From Amoeboaphelidium protococcarum X5 (Eukaryota; Fungi; Aphelidiomycota), in assembly GCA_023515725.1 (NCBI GenBank), contig JALDTO010000208.1, positions 435,868-499,867 of the forward strand: 64,000 nucleotides of DNA, given 5' to 3'. Below the pieces are notes generated by a model. It was not told where the DNA came from, did not search any database, and was given only the letters and a program-made list of their open reading frames with translations. Below are positions 5,925 through 64,000 of the stretch, in pieces. Position 1 is the stretch's first letter; every line of letters starts with the position of its first letter. The position numbers and the translations under genes are program-made.

Positions 5925-8399
5925 ATGAAAAGAAAATTGAATATTCTATCGTCATAATCATCGTCGTTAAATAAGGCACCTCAAAGCAGGCCATAAACGT
6001 CTTAATCTTCTCAAGTTACATCACCGTCCATTGATCAAAGTGGACAAAGTTCTTCAATTACAATATCACGAACATCGAAGGAGGAGAATGTTATAGTTGG
6101 TGTCAGGGTACGTCCTCTCTCTAGTCAAGAGCTGGAAAGCAGAGATCAAGAGATATGGGAGGTTAGTGCCGGAATGCCTGGCCAGTGTAACATGTCCCAA
6201 GAGTTTGCCGAACGTATGAAGCGACCATCAGGGTCCACTGATTATGCATTTGATATGGTATTCACGGGCAGCGACACTCTGCAGATATACGATCAGGCAA
6301 TCGGTGATATTGTTCAGTCAGCTGTCGATGGATACAATGCTACAGTATTCTGCTACGGGTAGACTAATAGTGGCAAGACGTTCACCATGACTGGCAGGGA
6401 GTAGTAGCCCGGATTGATTCCATGTGCCGTCGAGGATATATTTGCGTAGATATCTGGAAATAAGGAGCGCGAATTCCTACTCAGAGTCAGCTATATGGAA
6501 ATTTATAATGAGACAATAAAGGATTTGATTAACCCTGCGAATAGAGATATCAAGATCCATGAAGACAAGCACAAAGGCATTTACGTAAGTCCGCTGAAGG
6601 AGGTGGTCGTATCAAAGCCCGAAGATGTTGTTAAATTGCTCAAATTAGGCGATAAGAACAGACACACCAGCACCACTGATTATAATGAACACTCAAGTAG
6701 ATCGCACGCTATTTTCTAGATTACTATCGAGAGTAAGTAGAAATTATCAGATTCTTCGCTGGACTCTTCTGCCAGTAATGGCTTGGAAAAGTATCGCCAC
6801 CAAAATAGTAAAGCTGCGGCTAGTAAATCAGTCAAAGTATCTACTCTGAGTCTTATAGATTTAGCTGGATCTGAGAAGGCATCATCTTCGGCTGATAGGA
6901 GACGCGAAGGTGCGTACATTAATAGATCCTTGCTGACTTTAGGCACTGTGATATCACGCCTTGTCGTGGACAAGAATGGTCATATTCCGTATCGCGACAG
7001 TAAATTGACGCGTATTTTACAGCCATCACTTTAAGGAAATGCCAGAGTTGGTGTCATTTGCACAGTAAGCCCTGCTGCTTGTAATTATGAGGAGACGATT
7101 AATACTCTCAAGTTTGCACAGCGAATCAAGAAGGTTGTGACATCAGCTGAGTAAAGAGAAATTTTGGATGATAAGACTCTACTACTGCAGTACAAGAATG
7201 AGATTGAGTAATTGAAATCTAAACTGAACCAGATCGGCCAGTAGGAAGTTGCGTAGTCACTACTTGCCGTTGAGAAGTAGCGACTTGAAGAAGAGTTGCA
7301 ATAGTAGTAACTAGTCAGGAGTGCGTTGTAGGAACGGATAGATTAGCTTACCAAGATGATTCTGACTAGTTCTAGTACCAGTTCTTAACCAAGTGCTGGT
7401 AATGCTGCTGCTATAGCACAATAAAAGAAACAAAATCGCCTGTCTCTGATGTAAACTGCTAGATAATCTACGCCTGATCTGGTGGAAGAGGATTCTGAAT
7501 TGACCGGGAAACTATCATACTAACAATTGCAGTAGAAAGTGCTCAAACTGGAATCTGATTTGACTGTTAAAAGTAAAGAGTTGGAGGAGTTGCGTGACGA
7601 ATTGGATGCTTATAAAAATGGTGATAATTCCGCTGTTGATGCTCAGACAGCAGACTCTAATTAAATTGCGACATAATATGAGAGCTAGATAAGAGAGTTG
7701 GAAGCTGAGATTGAGCGACTTCGAAATAGATCTCCTTCAGATTTGAAGTTTGGTAGTTTGTCATTACTTGATGACTATTTAGAGCAGGACAAGTACACGG
7801 ACAAGGTGAATGAACTTTTGACAGAGATTGATTCTCTTCACGAGACCATTATGGAGCTTAATCAGGCTTTTACTGAAAAGGATCGTGTCATTCAAGATTT
7901 GTAGCTATAGTTGAAGTAGGTGTAAACAGCGCGTCCGTCTTCAGGCAAGTCCTCTACTCAAGGTGAAGATAGATAGCATTAATCTCCGAATGCCTCTTAT
8001 CTGTCTTCTTTGTTACGGCCACTGTCTTCAGGAAGTTCTGCGGCATCATCTTCTGGTAGGCGTGTCGAATTTCCACCATCTTTAGATCCGCCGACTCCTA
8101 TTGCATCATCTCCCGTGGCGACAAAGCAAGGTCAGACTGTAAATCAACCGTCAATATCGGAACTTTAAATGGATCTTCAAAAGGAGAAGACTCTTCGCAA
8201 AAATATTGAAGAGAGGTAGAGTGATAGAATTGCAATGTTGGAGACTGAACTTACAGTCACTCAAGCTCAGCTGAGTGTTGCCCAATTGCAATAGGAAGCA
8301 CGCAGAAGTTCTCAAACCTCAAAATCAGATAATGCATCCAGTCAAAGTTAATCAAATCAGCCAACTGCAAGGACAAGAAAAAGATCAGTACGTGAATGA
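5925..8399 (+). CDS. Kinesin-7 family (Kip2/CENP-E-like) motor
   Basis: [12 protein letters not shown]-loop YG(TAG=Q)[42 protein letters not shown], followed by coiled-coil tail. TGA 8397-8399. Confidence 0.93.
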
Positions 8400-8434
8400 T
8401 AATAGAAATTAGATTATATCAAGTCAACAAATTT

Positions 8435-11400
8435 TCACAACTCATCCCTTGACTAATGCAGTTCCAGTTCGCGAAACTTTTGTTCAAGTATCATTTTTTC
8501 AATATCCTTCTGCTAGCCATCATCTTTGTGCAAAAAGCTCTATGACTCTTGATTAAACATTTATTAAAGCTCAGCGTCAGACATAGAAAACTTGCGGAGC
8601 ATTTGTAGACAATCCCTGGACTTGACGGCTGTGATAGAATCCCCGGATTTGATTTTTCGAAAGAGTAATCTCATCAGAGAACGTAAATCTTCCGAGGCCA
8701 GATTCATTTAATTACAATTCAGAAGTTTTTCATGCAGAGCAAATATGGACAATTGATGACACTGTGAATCAGCGGATAGCTTATGCACAATAGAGAAGAT
8801 ATCCTGCAAAGTCAAATCTGACAGCAAGTGCAATATGTACTGCTTGCTTATTAGGATATTATCATTGCAACGTCCGCCAAAGCAAATAAGAGCCTCAACC
8901 AAATCCTTCTTCATATCAGTAGTAGAGTCTTTAAGCAGTAACTGAGGCAACAAATCTCGAGCTTGTTCCGCATTAATCTTACACTCCACTAATCGCTGAA
9001 GAGTATCATCAGAAGTGAATTATTTCTACTGTCTGATTTAAGACTATTACACAGCATCGCAAATACAATTATCTAAAATTTCCCAGAATTAGAATAACTA
9101 GGTGCCACCATGGTCTTTAAGCACGCTTGCTTAAGTGGGAGTACTGTCAACGATACTTTCAACATCAACCATGATACTGCTTGAGGGAATAGGCGTCACA
9201 TCGATCATATCGTTGTTGGCATCTTCTTCATTTTAAACGGGTGAAGGTACATCAACTTCATACTCTTTTCTGCGATATTCAACCTTGCTAGACAGTACGA
9301 CTTTAGACTGAGATGATACCTGCAAGTTCTAGTTGCGAGGTGTATGCGTAGACTTGGAATCCTCACTAATAGTTGCAGTGGATGATGACAACTGACATTG
9401 CACGCCATATTGTTAAAGAAAATTCTACACATTAGTAGGCAATTGCAGAAGCAGAGCTTTAAAAGTCTTCTAATGTTCCTTTTGTAAATTGTTCAGATGG
9501 TCCGCCAAGTTCTTCAACATTTAATCATCTTATACCTTCTGAATAAGCTCAACACATAACAAGACTACTCTTTTGTACAGAGACGCAGAATCATAATGTA
9601 CACCATGCTCAATCAACTTTCTGCAACCATACAACAATAGAGTATCACCATCGGCTATTCCCTGAGCTCTTTCACAAAATTCAATCAGTAGAGTTACGAC
9701 AACATTAGGCTTTAAATGGTTATCTTGAACATCTTTCAGAATTTCATCAATCATTGAATGCATGTGACTCTACTTGAGTCTCACGTTTAACAGGCTGACA
9801 TAGATTTCAGAATAACTCTGTGCCAAAATAGCGGGCTAATTTCTCAAAATCATCAACAATAAATCAAGCGTTGAATGTAGTACCTTTGGGTGACAGTTGT
9901 TGAGACAATGTAGAACACTCTGAGTATATAATTATTTAGATTCATCAGATATAGACCGATGATCCGTCACATACTCCATCAACTTATTAAGAGCATTGCG
10001 CTGAGCTTAAACATCACTCTCATTAGATTACGCCAATTCACATTAGACTTTAATCTTTTCATCAAAGGTTTGAATAGAATCATCTTTTTACACTGCGGTG
10101 CTTTACTGCAATTCTCCCACATTCACCTGATTGATAGATATGACAGATGCAATTTCTGGAGCAAACATTACATCTTTGGCAGCCTGTTACTTCATTGACT
10201 TAAACTTTCTGAGAATTGGCTTAGGAGCAGCAGATGCCGCATTGATATCATCTCCAGCCTTCAACTTTTCCTCATCACTTGCGTGGGCACTCTTGATTTT
10301 CCTATTCTTGAACTCGAGAAAGTCTCGGAAATCCTCAGTGATATTACGCTTTCGACCAATCTCTGAATCATCTCGCGGTGCCAGAGATTACACTTCACTT
10401 CTACTTACAACGGACGGTGCATCAGTAATACTCCGAGCGACTTGGAATTCATCTAAAGGCATCAGAACAGCACACGTCATTCTCTACTTTCTAGACCGCA
10501 TTCTGATTTCATTCTTACCAATGACAGAATTAACTGGTGCATTGACACATATTTCCTCTTACTAAGGAATAATAGTAACTGCGTCTACTTGAACTTTAAG
10601 AGCTTCATTAACCACTCTAGTCTGTGGTTAAACTTTTTACTTCTAGGAAGATGTAGCATTGGCCTTTCTTGCAGGTGCAGTAGAGCCAGCACCAGAATAA
10701 CTGTACAAAATCTATTAGCACGACTTGGCATACTGTGGTGGCAAGTTAGCTACAATATTCTGACACGATGACAGATCATAAGAACAATATTCTTATAAAC
10801 ACTTTTTAGCTGTATCTCTGACACCACCATCCGCATCGGTTATAAGCCCAGAGATAAGAGTAGGCGTGACGCCTTCAAACTTTACTAATAACAATTTCCC
10901 GTGATGAGATATAATCACCAATATACAGAGAGCTATTGCATTACGCACATTTTTATTAGGATGCTTACACAATGCAGAATCGTTAAATCTGATCAACCAT
11001 CCAACACTGGCACTGAAGCACTTGGCCAATTCCTGCAGTGTAGACTATCCACGAACAACGTTAATCTTATTCGCCCTTGCACAAAGTTTCAATAGAGCAT
11101 CGAAGCTGATATCATTCAAAATTTAAAACGACTCAGAATCATCATTATTTCCACCACCAGTACTACCGTCAGAACGCCATATTTGGCTTAGTTTCATAAT
11201 GAGGTTGCAGGCATTTCCACTCAACTTGGACCGGTCACTCAGCAGACACTGCTTTAGTCCACTACCTATAGTTCTCATTCCATCTCTAAAACCAGACAAC
11301 CGACATACATTTTCATCTCCGCACCATACATTCAGAACTGTAATTGCTTCATCAAACTATTTCCAAGTGGTTTCATCCTCCTTCTTACTGAACAGACCCG

Positions 11401-59413: not shown

Positions 59414-60007
59414 ATACTAATTATTGTATTTTATGCGAGCGTAACCTTTTTCATTTTTAACGCGTTTAATGGATGATGGGTTGAATTTTGGTATTCGCTC
59501 ATTAAGCCTTTTTGATTAACAGCAGGCTTGTTCCGTTTGATCATTTTGTAGCTCAAGTGCTTCAGATGAAGTGCAAGAATTTCTAAACTGTGGACATTTA
59601 TCACTGACCATATATGATATGTGAGATTAGAACAAAATCGAGTTCACTAAGCAGTCAGTCATCAGATATAACACGCTCTGAGGAAATCTAATCCCGCATT
59701 TAAAAATGAAATTACAGATTATCCATGGCGGTGGCTATAAAGGAGCCCCTTTACTCCCAAATGTGAACGTGGTATGATATTTTACTATCCATTGAATGAG
59801 GGGACCATAACGAGACCCCTGTAATCCCAATATTGATAATCAATATTTTCCGGGCGCGCGATAAGAAAAAAAGACACATCACCTTCGCAATCAAACAATT
59901 TGAATTGATCGCGAATCCATCGTAACAACGCGATTTGAGATCAAATTAAAATTAAAACATATAGGATGACAATATGTATATTTAGGACATATCCAACCAA
60001 AAAGGAG

Positions 60008-60082
60008 CGCCCAGTAGCGGGCTCGAACCGCTGACCTGTGGATTAAGAGTCCATCGCTCTACCGAAACTGAGCCAACCGGGG
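60008..60082 (-). tRNA. tRNA-Lys (anticodon CTT)
   Basis: Reverse complement CCCCGGTTGGCTCAGTTTCGGTAGAGCGATGGACTCTTAATCCACAGGTCAGCGGTTCGAGCCCGCTACTGGGCG folds as a cloverleaf with A and B boxes. A T5 Pol III terminator lies 4 nt downstream. Confidence 0.92.
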
Positions 60083-60840
60083 TATTCAGGTATTTCCTTA
60101 CTTCGATGGATATGATACGGTAACACAGACTATAAACGCAATAGGAACAGACAGGAAGCTATATACAAAGATTGAGAGTCGACCAGAGACACCAACAGAA
60201 GTACAGGAAGATAAAATATGTTAATAATATAAACAATTCATTAACACGTTAAGTGAAAGAAATCAATGTTCATAAGAGTCGCGCACTTGAAACAATGTTG
60301 AGCGCCACAGAGAGTCAGATGTTGATACTTGATCGACGCGTGTGCTTGTTTACATGAGTTGAAATTAAATATTACTTAATTACTGTGAATTCGCTGCTCA
60401 ATAAACTACAGTAAAGCACAATTATGCACCATATTTTGAAGTTTATGAGTTAAAACCATCCATACTATATCTATTGCATCTAAAATGGGCCGTATAGATC
60501 TTCCCATGGATTTGATTAAACGCGGTCGCATCGTCGGTGAAACAACTTTTCCCCCTCTCTTTCTTTGATTTAGTCCAGCCTCGCTTACTATCTCATACTG
60601 AAATTCATATTTAAGTGAGATGACTTTGAAAAGAACTTCAAGTCAGCTCTGTCGTCTTTGTTACCGGCTGGATTTGAGAAGCCTTATGCCGAGTCCCAAG
60701 TTGCCGACGAAGTGGTTCTTTTTGCTGATTACTCCAATGTCGCCATTAATTTTACGAGTCTCCGTCTGAAGCGTCCCAATTATTAAAAGGCACCTGCCAG
60801 AGAGCCTGTTGAACAAATGTAGTTGGACATTCTATGAGAA

Positions 60841-61010
60841 TGTAAGTCTATTCCGGCGACAATGTGTATAGTGGAACGTCTGTTTAGCCATTGCAAATTG
60901 CTTTTGACTGAACGAAGATCCTCAATGATATATGACACTTTGCAAAAGTTAATTTTTTGAAAGGGAACTAGCGTTTATGGAGAGCAGATCAATTACTAAA
61001 CATTTTGTAG
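60841..61010 (+). pseudogene. hAT transposase C-terminal dimerisation domain relic
   Basis: IPATMCIVERLFSHCKLLLTERRSSMIYDTLQKLIF, then a frameshift to LKGNQRLW; matches hAT PxTSxxxERxFS...R..L...L.FL..N..W. Confidence 0.75.
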
Positions 61011-61610: not shown

Positions 61611-63722
61611 ATGCAGCAGAAATTGACCAAGCTTTCCAACTTATTGAGGGATGGCAACATAGCCCACAATCGGTACTAGTGGTACATGTAGAAGGTGGAA
61701 GGTAAAATAGAAGATTGTCTCAGGAGATTTTACAAATAGCTAATCTGCCAAATTATATTAACAGCGTTGAAGCTGTACTTTTACTAGTTCTTTGAGGATA
61801 ATCCAAATAGCTTTAACTGCCCTCAAATGTCTATAGCTACATTGAGGAAAATATTTCTGTCAGTGTCTATTTAAACTGATCATCAGCCTCATAATGCACA
61901 ACATCCTGATAATAAGATGATACAAGATGGTGACGAATTGCATAGACGCATTCTTCATACCTGGATCTAAGCTCGTGGGACCGACATTCCGTTTGCTAAA
62001 TTGCCACGTAGGTATAATGAATACGTGTCCAAATTCTGCCTAAACTATATAAAGTTGTGCCAAGTTCAATTGAATACCAATTTGGAAAATCGTTTGGTGA
62101 AGCTGCTGAAAATCGCTATCACTAATATTGATAAAATGAAGTGTTGGCTTAAAATAGTCTCGTTAAGGAGTTGATTGATTGCATTGATTAAAAGCGTGTT
62201 TTCAATTTCACTGAAGATAACCTGAGTATCTACTGCAAAGATGTTGAGAATCGTTTGTCAGAGGAGGACATTGAGTTGCTGAATCTTATTTATACACCTT
62301 TGGCTGAAGCTGCAGGACTTATATAGCACGTCTCGGTAATATCTCAAAAAGTAGGCGACAACTGGCATGAGTATACACGGTTAATGTATCTGATATAGAG
62401 ATATTTCAAAGATAATGGAATGGTTAGTTTCAATATAGTTCCGGATTTAAAGCTAAAGCCATTCCACGTCACTTTGAACAAGTCTTATGCAATGACAACT
62501 ACAATTTTTGAAAAACCTAGAGATGAAAGCGTTGAAAATTTTGTGGTGCTTTAGGTATAAGAAGAGTCGAAAGTACGAAGAATTCTACTCCGACTTGTAT
62601 TCAAATTCGATTTCCTACGAAGCGGGATTTATAGCTAGTGAATAATTGGAGGCAGGTAAATAGTCCAAGGACGGCGAATAAACGCGTCTATCTGCCTAGC
62701 TATGGGCTCCTGGAGTTACTGGGGAATCTTCAAAGTAAAGCTCTAAGCAATGGAAAAAGTTTGAACATCAGTAGATGCCTGTTAAGAAGCAGAAATCAAG
62801 TGCTTCCCTCAGTTCACCTTATTCGCTGCGCTCTAAAAGCTAGTCTGGTAAAGCTTAAAGTAATCCGCATTTAGAAATGGTGATGCAAATTCTGCAGCAA
62901 TAGGAATAGCTCAGATAATAGCTCGCGGAACTACATGAAGATGATTAGGTATTTGAATTAGGCGTGGCAAGTGAAGCTGAAGAACCTGCAAGCTCTATTG
63001 ATGATGTAGTACAGTTTGAGCTTCCCAGTTAAGCTGGAGAATCTGACGTGTCTAGTGCTGCAAATGTTGAAGATGATGATCCCTTTGAGACTGACTCGAC
63101 TGACGATTAGCAGAACGTTGGAGAAGATGGTGGAGATCAGAATGTAGATTATGGGGATGAGTTGAGCGATCAAGACTTGGCCACCTTCCCCGACTTCTAC
63201 AATGCAACTGAGCAGAGATAGAATTGTGAAAAGTCCCAGTTGGATTGGCTCAATAATCCAAATTTCAAAAATTGGATATTAATGATCAGCAGCTGGTATT
63301 CATTGGTCTGGATCCTGGTGTGGACTTTCTGGCGTTTATCTAATGTACAGTCTGTTGTGGACAGGTGTGATGTGGCTTATCTAGTTCGCGGATTATGAAA
63401 TCTGGAACGATTTTGATCTGAGTCAAGAAGCAACCTTAGTGAAAACTTTGAGAACACTCTTAATCTGTGAACGATAAGAACTTATTACACTTTTTTATCT
63501 TAGGAGTAAACGGTTATCCAGTAAACTGTGTCTTAATTGTGTCCCTCCTCGTGCAAAAAATGCTGCCAAACCACAAGAAAACTTGCGGATACCTGTGGCT
63601 CAAGCCTTAGTAGCTGTACCTATTGGTTTAAATGTATTTTGCAAACTTGACGCGGTGAAGCATGAGTTCTGTCATCCGGTTTTGCGTTGTACTGATCTCA
63701 AAGTAGAAGCCTGCAACCTTCT
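61611..63722 (+). pseudogene. Decayed Fanzor (eukaryotic TnpB-like RNA-guided RuvC nuclease)
   Basis: Ordered motifs across frameshifts: KLTKLSNLLR...IILTALKLYF; VQLNTNLENRLVKLL; NWHEYTRLMYLIQRYFKDNGMVSFNIVPDLKLKPFHVTL; RuvC-I LVFIGLDPG (D at 63311); RuvC-II/Zn KRLSSKLCLNC (63508-63540); HPVLRC-x7-C. RuvC-III is not seen. Confidence 0.65.
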
Positions 63723-63789
63723 TCTGTCTTTTGCGCTTAATCACTTGGTATACAATCCTGACACTCCAATGCCAGACATCTCCTTTCGT

Positions 63790-63940
63790 GCAAATGGATA
63801 AATGCGGAGTTGGTACCGTCATCCTCAATGCAGTTGTTGATGGTGAGCGTCGCTGTCTCAAGCTGGAGAATGTCATGTACTTCCCAGGTGCTAACTGCTC
63901 CTTATTGTCAGTGTCGAAGCTGAAATACTCTGGCAAGGTG
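63790..63940 (+). mobile_element. Ty1/copia LTR-retrotransposon protease-region fragment
   Basis: ANG, then frameshift to GVGTVILNAVVDGERRCLKLENVMYFPGANCSLLSVSKLKYSG, matching copia GxGTV...L.NVLYVP.L..NLLSVS.L...G. Confidence 0.75.
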
Positions 63941-64000
63941 ACGTTGATTGATCTTTACACCAACTTCTTCAGCTCTTTGATTGCTAATATTAGGTGGCAC

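Follow-up and report, generated by a model that had tools for sequence, protein, structure and literature searches.

Remnants of two truncated Fanzor-type genes, probably lying end to end in transposon debris beside a tRNA-Lys gene of Amoeboaphelidium protococcarum

Fanzors are the eukaryotic homologues of TnpB, and many types of transposon serve as their carriers. Some Fanzor1 genes are carried by hAT transposons, and the glutamate of RuvC-II occupies a rearranged position in Fanzors (PMC13565253). Fanzor proteins from the sister species Amoeboaphelidium occidentale are included in a supplementary table of Saito et al. 2023; our literature search found no paper that pairs Fanzors with Amoeboaphelidium or with aphelids.

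Here we analyze a locus in a stretch of 64,000 nucleotides from Amoeboaphelidium protococcarum (the window, i.e., the whole stretch of DNA that was analyzed, C207:435868-499867). Our reading, to which we assign a probability of roughly 0.85, is that the locus consists of the truncated front ends of two dead Fanzor genes lying end to end in transposon debris. The two belong to separate families, which we call B and A in their order along the window. Like the Fanzor1-type proteins SpuFz1 and Parasitella parasitica Fanzor 1, family A and the relatives of family B have the RuvC-I aspartate, the PF07282 domain and the RuvC-III aspartate, as well as a glutamate seven positions before the first cysteine of the zinc ribbon (PMC13565253). 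Their length is likewise about 700 residues, including a long N-terminal extension, and they are multi-copy and occur among transposons. Differences from the Fanzor1 type are that the window copy retains nothing past the RuvC-I region, that Pfam has no family matching the N-terminal domain of family B, and that the RuvC-I region of family B, represented by the near-intact relative L026, finds only seven proteins among 1.84 billion representative ones, all of which look like code-6 gene models from the same species complex. The placement of families A and B with Fanzor1 rather than Fanzor2 is putative. The best PDB sequence matches of the family A C-terminus are TnpB-like protein L79, P. parasitica Fanzor 1 and ISDra2 TnpB, and the matches that it and the public family B relative P0001 make to TnpB, Fanzor and Cas12f structures are weak (E = 0.1-0.9), consistent with such an assignment but not proof of it.

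The source assembly comprises 23.6 Mb in 346 contigs, with a G+C content of about 40%. A code in which TAA and TAG specify glutamine is known for A. protococcarum, and long reading frames emerge in this DNA solely if Gln is assigned to both TAA and TAG, leaving TGA as the only stop. The preliminary description was right that no standard-code open reading frame spans the region and that code 6 yields long TGA-free segments. For the genome as a whole we used a six-frame profile search with Pfam PF07282 (Cas12f1-like TNB domain; cut-off 26.3 bits), which gave 41 matches in the 23.6 Mb, 36 of them above the Pfam cut-off and none inside the window. Pfam PF01385 (OrfB_IS605 central region) had no match genome-wide at E <= 10, an absence that is usual for Fanzors and not disqualifying. 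These 41 matches, several of which are family A copies that read as a single open frame in code 6, bear out the suggestion that the lineage still carries Fanzors. The further suggestion that standard-code mining would miss them was overstated: the C-terminal TNB/RuvC-III region lies in standard-code frames of 100-127 residues, the six-frame Pfam search finds this region of the genome's Fanzors, and public protein collections contain code-6 gene models of family B. The features of the locus are collected in Table 1; for analyses that reach past the end of the window we used window coordinates 59001-69000 (locus L009).

Table 1. Features between the tRNA-Lys gene and the end of the window, in window coordinates
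Feature	Coordinates	Strand	Remarks
tRNA-Lys(CTT)	60007-60082	-	ARAGORN; Rfam RF00005 52.8 bits
Solo LTR or LTR fragment	60113-60346	+	about 20-40 nt upstream of tRNA-Lys; from a multi-copy LTR retroelement
hAT C-terminal dimerisation domain relic	60847-60963	+	PF05699 21.7 bits (cut-off 21.4); one TGA inside
Family B segment 1	61611-62171	+	frame 0; N-terminal region, ATG start
Family B segment 2	62192-62551	+	frame +2; best-conserved N-terminal motif W.EYTRLMYLIQRYF..FNIVPDLKLKPFHVTL
Family B segment 3	62559-63257	+	frame 0; EFYSDLYS, Ser/Gln-rich and acidic linker, WLNNPNF just before RuvC-I
Family B segment 4	63257-63340	+	frame +2; RuvC-I strand LVFIGLDPGV, catalytic Asp codon retained
Decayed family B tail or spacer (tentative)	63341-63507	+	four TGA in the RuvC-I frame within 55 codons
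Family A part 1	63508-63806	+	residues ~35-133; contains SSKLCLNC and HPVLRC..C
Putative copia-type piece, 155 nt	63807-63961	+	from a retroelement coding region; inserted in the family A fragment; not in intact copies
Family A continued	63962-64000	+	on past the window to ~64872 (residue ~378 of 696)

Judged by its sequence, 61611-63340 is a genuine decayed Fanzor/TnpB-type gene in the TAR=Gln code. The path through its four segments amounts to 568 codons, with three frameshifts between two alternating frames, 24 in-frame TAA or TAG codons and no TGA. Its homology to the full-length members L024, L025 and L026 is collinear, at 33-45% identity over about 330 residues, the matching spans in the window being 61767-62144, 62252-62542 and 62559-62621, followed by RuvC-I at 63263-63334. 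Segment 1 is 33% identical over 126 residues to residues 44-167 of the near-intact L026 protein, and has collinear matches also to L019, L024 and L025. Segment 2 is 38-45% identical to L024, L025 and L026 and 41% identical to L019; the alignment of its motif (A1) has 10 invariant columns, and the A1 profile finds 11 places in the genome, among which the place in the window scores 98.4 bits. Segment 3 has tblastn matches to L019, L024-L026 and the public relatives P0001, P0004 and P0005. For segment 4 the identity is 59-62% to P0004 and P0005 (24-27 residues) and 54% to L025 (63263-63334), and the motif around the RuvC-I aspartate is retained: FIGLDPG at 63293-63313 aligns with FIAIDPG of P0004, FVGIDPG of L025 and YVGVDVG of L026, the last two being relatives in which the D-E-D triad is complete. 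The motifs ALKLYF, YTRLMYLIQRYF..FNIVP..PFHVTL and FIGLDPG that had been picked out by eye are thus present, and they align with the Fanzor-like genes of the same genome. The acidic stretch that had been noticed before RuvC-I is likewise there (31% Asp+Glu over 62940-63220), but it had been taken for an insert; because such a tract also precedes RuvC-I in L024-L026, P0001, P0005 and P0007, it belongs to the family as a whole. In Pfam searches the stop-free pieces of the relic (28-67 residues) gave no matches. Common descent of its frameshifts with those of the relic L019 is not supported: the two relics share the frame pattern, yet their second shifts do not coincide.

The relatives show what a complete family B protein contains. 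The C-termini of L024 (C158), L025 (C235) and L026 (C244) match PF07282 at 39.9-40.8 bits, and that of the public relative P0001 at 37.4 bits. L026 is near-intact, with 747 codons in one frame and a single TGA; its catalytic triad is Asp506 in YVGVDVG, Glu683 in HEKGTS and Asp720 in NGDVNAA, and the first cysteine of its zinc ribbon is Cys690, seven positions after the glutamate. Among the relatives, 177-178 residues separate the RuvC-I aspartate from the RuvC-II glutamate. The source of one public relative is NCBI assembly GCA_023515745.1. Closest to the RuvC-I of the window are P0004 and P0005, which are themselves relics split by a retroelement piece and represent a type that was observed at one locus, L043. 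L024 and L026 form a syntenic pair in which the flanks are 88-94% alike and the Fanzor part only 68-78%, and this lower similarity of the Fanzor part indicates that family B is old. After the stop codon, L024-L026 share a segment of about 470-490 nt that is conserved at 86-94% and is a putative omegaRNA region; this segment has no match in the window or the next 5 kb.

Downstream of RuvC-I the family B gene fades out. Neither tblastx nor tblastn over window coordinates 59001-69000 finds family B beyond 63340, except for a faint trace at 63470-63502, where NDKNLLHFFIL recalls the DKNAIP..ML motif of the family. The DNA of 63341-63507 has one weak match elsewhere in the genome, at 73% identity to C146, and since its homology is not significant the exact end of the family B part is uncertain. 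The window copy has no RuvC-II glutamate upstream of a zinc finger, there being no homology past 63340, and the TNB zinc ribbon (PF07282) and the RuvC-III aspartate are absent from the window.

What follows at 63508 belongs to a different family. Intact copies of family A (loci L001-L008) are PF07282-positive and separate from family B; the two families are alike just in their C-terminal 117 residues (hhalign E = 2.7e-5). The family A element is abundant and about 3.35 kb long, and its intact copies are about 97% alike. A copy stitched from contig C154, along which family A coordinates are counted (6980-10332), has a frame of 696 codons with six in-frame TAR codons and a TGA stop, and its catalytic and zinc-ribbon residues are Asp447, Glu625/Cys632 and Asp662. 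The N-terminus of its protein holds KRSSSKLCPNYVPRAKNAAKPQ, followed by ..SRCTDLKVETC... Against three intact family A copies, 63508-63806 shows 85-86% DNA identity, and over 103 residues it is 78% identical in amino acids to the family A protein, a match also seen by tblastn. The window copy as a whole corresponds to stitched positions 8258-9288 and residues ~35-378, ending before RuvC-I, and is without the first ~1.28 kb and the last ~1.04 kb of the element. It is interrupted twice. The first interruption, the putative copia-type piece, has five other copies in the genome, 92% identical over exactly these 155 nt, and as a 52-residue translation (63806-63961) it scores 24.8 bits (E = 2.7e-5) against PF22936 Pol_BBD, whose cut-off is 27. 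The second interruption, at about 64069-64238, is a 170-nt low-copy repeat.

Since both fragments are missing RuvC-II, the zinc ribbon and RuvC-III, and neither has a guide-RNA region at its 3' end, no nuclease is possible from this locus, which is ordinary pseudogene wreckage: dead, truncated and fixed. With the other Fanzors of the genome it has in common the TAR=Gln code, an old subfamily upstream of tRNA genes and the young family A, and it differs from them in consisting of two truncated N-terminal fragments with no guide-RNA region. For tests of Fanzor activity in the lineage the material of choice is not this stretch but the near-intact L026 and those family A copies that are intact.

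How did the two fragments come to lie side by side? The whole interval from the tRNA-Lys gene to the next host gene (at ~65500, past the window) would be a patch of transposon debris, made up in order of the solo LTR, the hAT remnant, the family B piece, and the family A fragment with its copia piece and 170-nt repeat. The family B piece represents the N-terminal two-thirds of the gene up to RuvC-I, from 61611 to about 63340-63502. The family A piece directly abuts it and comes from an internal part of the N-terminal region, in a family that is young and still has intact copies. One way to arrive at this arrangement is a nested insertion, in which a family A transposon jumped into the family B gene and was later trimmed. 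The two fragments do abut within a few bases (63502/63508) and lie on the same strand, as expected from such an event. However, family A lacks both its ends, so that no element end is found at either junction, and no 3' remainder of family B turns up on the far side of family A in 59001-69000. With neither element ends nor a remainder of family B, at least two further deletions are needed, and we consider a nested insertion possible but doubtful. We infer instead that the B/A junction arose from a deletion rather than from a clean insertion, and likewise infer the order of events from a second copy of the region.

This second copy is on contig C233 (L020/L037), where synteny with the window extends over 4.4 kb downstream, at 87.7%, and includes the surroundings of the tRNA gene, at 80-87%. 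C233 joins window position 61872 straight to 64673, at an ATTT microhomology, and the next 197 nt are family A. Both elements extend on the window side of each breakpoint, so it is C233 that lost the 2.8 kb, and because this deletion runs across both fragments they were already adjacent before the two regions diverged. Both would then have been dead and next to each other before the duplication or hybridisation that gave rise to the paralogous region on C233, and the locus would in this way help to date both Fanzor families against that event. In public DNA contigs the relic is single-copy, and it recurs at 94-97% identity in a further sample of this organism, in a biofilm metagenome from 2013 and in a second organism. 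Deletion-like joints in those contigs derive from family A, whose elements are multi-copy, rather than from this locus.

The hAT remnant raises the question of whether it and the family B relic are parts of one composite hAT transposon with the Fanzor as cargo. Its translation shows SIPAT..VERLFS..LLLTERR, a borderline match to a fragment of the domain; it is co-oriented with the family B relic, lies on its upstream side and ends about 640 nt before it, and hAT-borne Fanzors are described in the review cited above (PMC13565253). On the other hand, there is no hAT remnant or PF05699 match beside the family B loci L019, L024, L025 and L026, the distance from the start of the L026 reading frame to its tRNA gene is only ~720 nt, which is too little for a transposase, and a paralog of the hAT relic at C249:268.6 kb has no Fanzor match adjacent to it. 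A composite element is thus unlikely, and since no other family B locus has a hAT remnant we treat this one as a separate fragment of the patch.

The preliminary description had instead seen one relic across 61611-63722, with an N-terminus, RuvC-I, a shortened RuvC-II, a zinc finger and copia sequence over RuvC-III, and the order of motifs is indeed right by eye, with Cys-rich motifs following RuvC-I; but this is very improbable, and aligning the window with intact copies of family A refutes it, because the Cys-rich stretch is 78% identical to family A residues ~35-133, far upstream of its RuvC-I Asp447, because in the relatives Asp and Glu stand 177 residues apart with HEKGTS..C..C as the motif there, and because PF07282 has no match in the window. 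What stood of that description is a decayed Fanzor-type gene in the TAR=Gln code; what did not is its unity, since there are two fragments and not a single compressed gene. Specifically, SSKLCLNC and HPVLRC..C are part of the family A N-terminus and form no zinc finger of the relic. The spacing of ~65 codons between RuvC-I and RuvC-II compares parts of two genes, and so does the AAA codon found in place of the RuvC-II glutamate codon; both are artefacts of a two-gene junction. The copia-type piece, rather than replacing RuvC-III, interrupts the N-terminal region of family A. A motif order read by eye across the junction of two elements can therefore mimic a single compressed gene.

Equally improbable is a reading in which the family B part remains expressed and its changes of frame stem from tiny introns or programmed frameshifting. 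In its favor, the relic L019 has the pattern 0, +2, 0 as well, and a GT..AG stretch of 17 nt near 62130-62170 would bring the frame back. Against it, the second shift of L019 does not coincide with that of the window, L026 reads the same regions in one frame, and the gene lacks everything past RuvC-I, where four TGA codons come within the next 55 codons.

The reading of the locus as two truncated Fanzor fragments in transposon debris leaves the neighboring tRNA gene to be considered. The 64-kb window contains no tRNA gene but this one; the family B relic begins 1.5 kb upstream of it in divergent orientation, and the 5' side of the tRNA gene faces the patch. Other members of family B are similarly placed: L024 and L026 have a tRNA-Leu(AAG) gene ~0.85 kb upstream, L019 has a tRNA-Arg(TCG) gene ~1.2 kb upstream, and the family B places at C57:126.9 kb, C98:1409.4 kb and C212:375 kb are on the 5' side of a tRNA gene. 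In total, at least 7 of the 11 places found by the A1 profile have a tRNA gene, Lys-CTT, Leu-AAG or Arg-TCG among others, whose 5' side is within ~2.5 kb; this distance census is built on place lists and on a list of tRNA genes that gives their minimum number, 63 of 1171 candidates having been scored. For comparison, 21 other loci with a total length of ~130 kb have two tRNA genes altogether, one being the tRNA-Lys of C233, which is already counted, and the other that of L036, next to a further old Fanzor-like locus. Three of the 21 are family A loci of 10 kb each, and these have none; the young family A shows no comparable association with tRNA genes. The orientation of family B relative to the tRNA gene is mixed, mostly divergent but tandem in at least two cases, and the distances vary. 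The locus is in any case an independent instance that ties an old Fanzor subfamily to tRNA upstream regions, in an aphelid where TAA and TAG encode glutamine. The association could reflect an element that carried the old subfamily and integrated 5' of tRNA genes, as opposed to relics that merely survived there, and we offer this as a tentative idea only. If true, it would mean a tRNA-directed, Fanzor-bearing DNA element, of which we found no report in the literature.

Retroelements that are directed by Pol III are known from other organisms, e.g., Ty3 of yeast and the DGLT-A and TRE elements of Dictyostelium. The LTR family to which the copy at 60113-60346 belongs is a Pol III-directed retroelement too: it has at least 40 copies in the genome at 78-91% identity, among them several same-strand pairs 5.1-5.2 kb apart, and, like Ty3, DGLT-A and TRE, it sits a short distance upstream of many tRNA genes, with copies 14-48 nt upstream of at least 10 of them in the partial tRNA list. 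The family B relics differ from these retroelements in lying 0.8-2.5 kb from the tRNA gene, at no fixed short distance and in both orientations. Given LTR copies 14-48 nt upstream of so many tRNA genes, the region upstream of a tRNA gene is a landing zone for transposons in this genome. The Fanzor relics sit within that landing zone.

A near-intact copy of the older Fanzor family, family B, lies on the minus strand of another contig of the assembly, where a frame of 747 codons is interrupted by one TGA and the D-E-D triad is retained; its syntenic partner on C158 (L024) is heavily frameshifted. A segment of 470-490 nt recurs in these two family B loci and in a third, on C235 (L025), directly 3' of the stop codon in L025 and in the near-intact locus (L026), and about 900 nt further away in L024. 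The segment is 86-94% conserved among the three loci, as against 67-78% for the Fanzor reading frames, and it is a candidate guide-RNA region. It has no counterpart in the window. Another family B-type relic, in a second assembly (L043), carries an integrase/chromodomain-like retroelement piece inside its zinc-ribbon region, and P0004 and P0005, two gene models in public collections, are chimeric, made up of this relic and the retroelement piece.

Copies of the younger family, family A, define an element whose 5' part, about 1.16 kb, is non-coding or of unknown nature, and in which only about 90 nt separate the stop codon from the element end. The ends are short terminal inverted repeats, TGTATTTTTCACA, and the copy on C154 is bordered by an 8-bp direct repeat, AGAGCACA. 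In the truncated family A fragment of the window, the in-line copia-type piece, for which there are five source-like copies at 92%, looks like filler DNA taken up at a break.

Matches to the TNB domain PF07282 occur as many pairs on different contigs with near-equal scores (e.g., C158/C244, C264/C98, C212/C264 and C207/C249), and the flanks of the paired regions are 87-94% alike. Much of the genome seems to be present in the assembly as two diverged copies, and independent insertions are therefore fewer than copy counts imply.

Features located in and around the window and in related loci
Feature	Location	Strand	Remarks
LTR copy, ~230 nt	window 60113-60346		multi-copy family, n ≥ 40
hAT transposase dimerisation-domain relic	window 60847-60963	+	PF05699, 21.7 bits, borderline
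Copia-type coding-region piece	window 63807-63961		exactly 155 nt
Putative desaturase/hydroxylase frame, first host gene past the transposon patch	L009:6534-8324 (window coordinates 65534-67324, beyond window end)		597 codons
Near-intact family B Fanzor	L026:1441-3681 (G000:C244:467460-469700)	-	
Conserved segment (candidate guide-RNA region)	L024:5612-6130; L025:4814-5276; L026:929-1421		
Family B-type relic	L043:6001-7260 (NCBI GCA_023515745.1, JALECJ010000254.1)		RuvC-I to RuvC-III retained
Family A element, ~3.35 kb	stitched C154 copy (L010+L001), 6980-10332		further copies L011+L004, L012

The LTR in the window belongs to a family of at least 40 copies, several of them paired at a spacing of 5.1-5.2 kb. 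At 10 or more sites a copy precedes a tRNA gene and lies 14-48 nt from its 5' end. Such placement suggests that this aphelid has a Pol III-directed LTR retroelement. The hAT relic has a paralog at C249:268641-268733, and the LTR junction is common to both.

The open frame beyond the patch is approximately 88% conserved in the C233 paralog and contains the motifs HHPLVY, HKPHHRW and HHSMHH; by eye only, its product looks like a histidine-rich membrane desaturase/hydroxylase.
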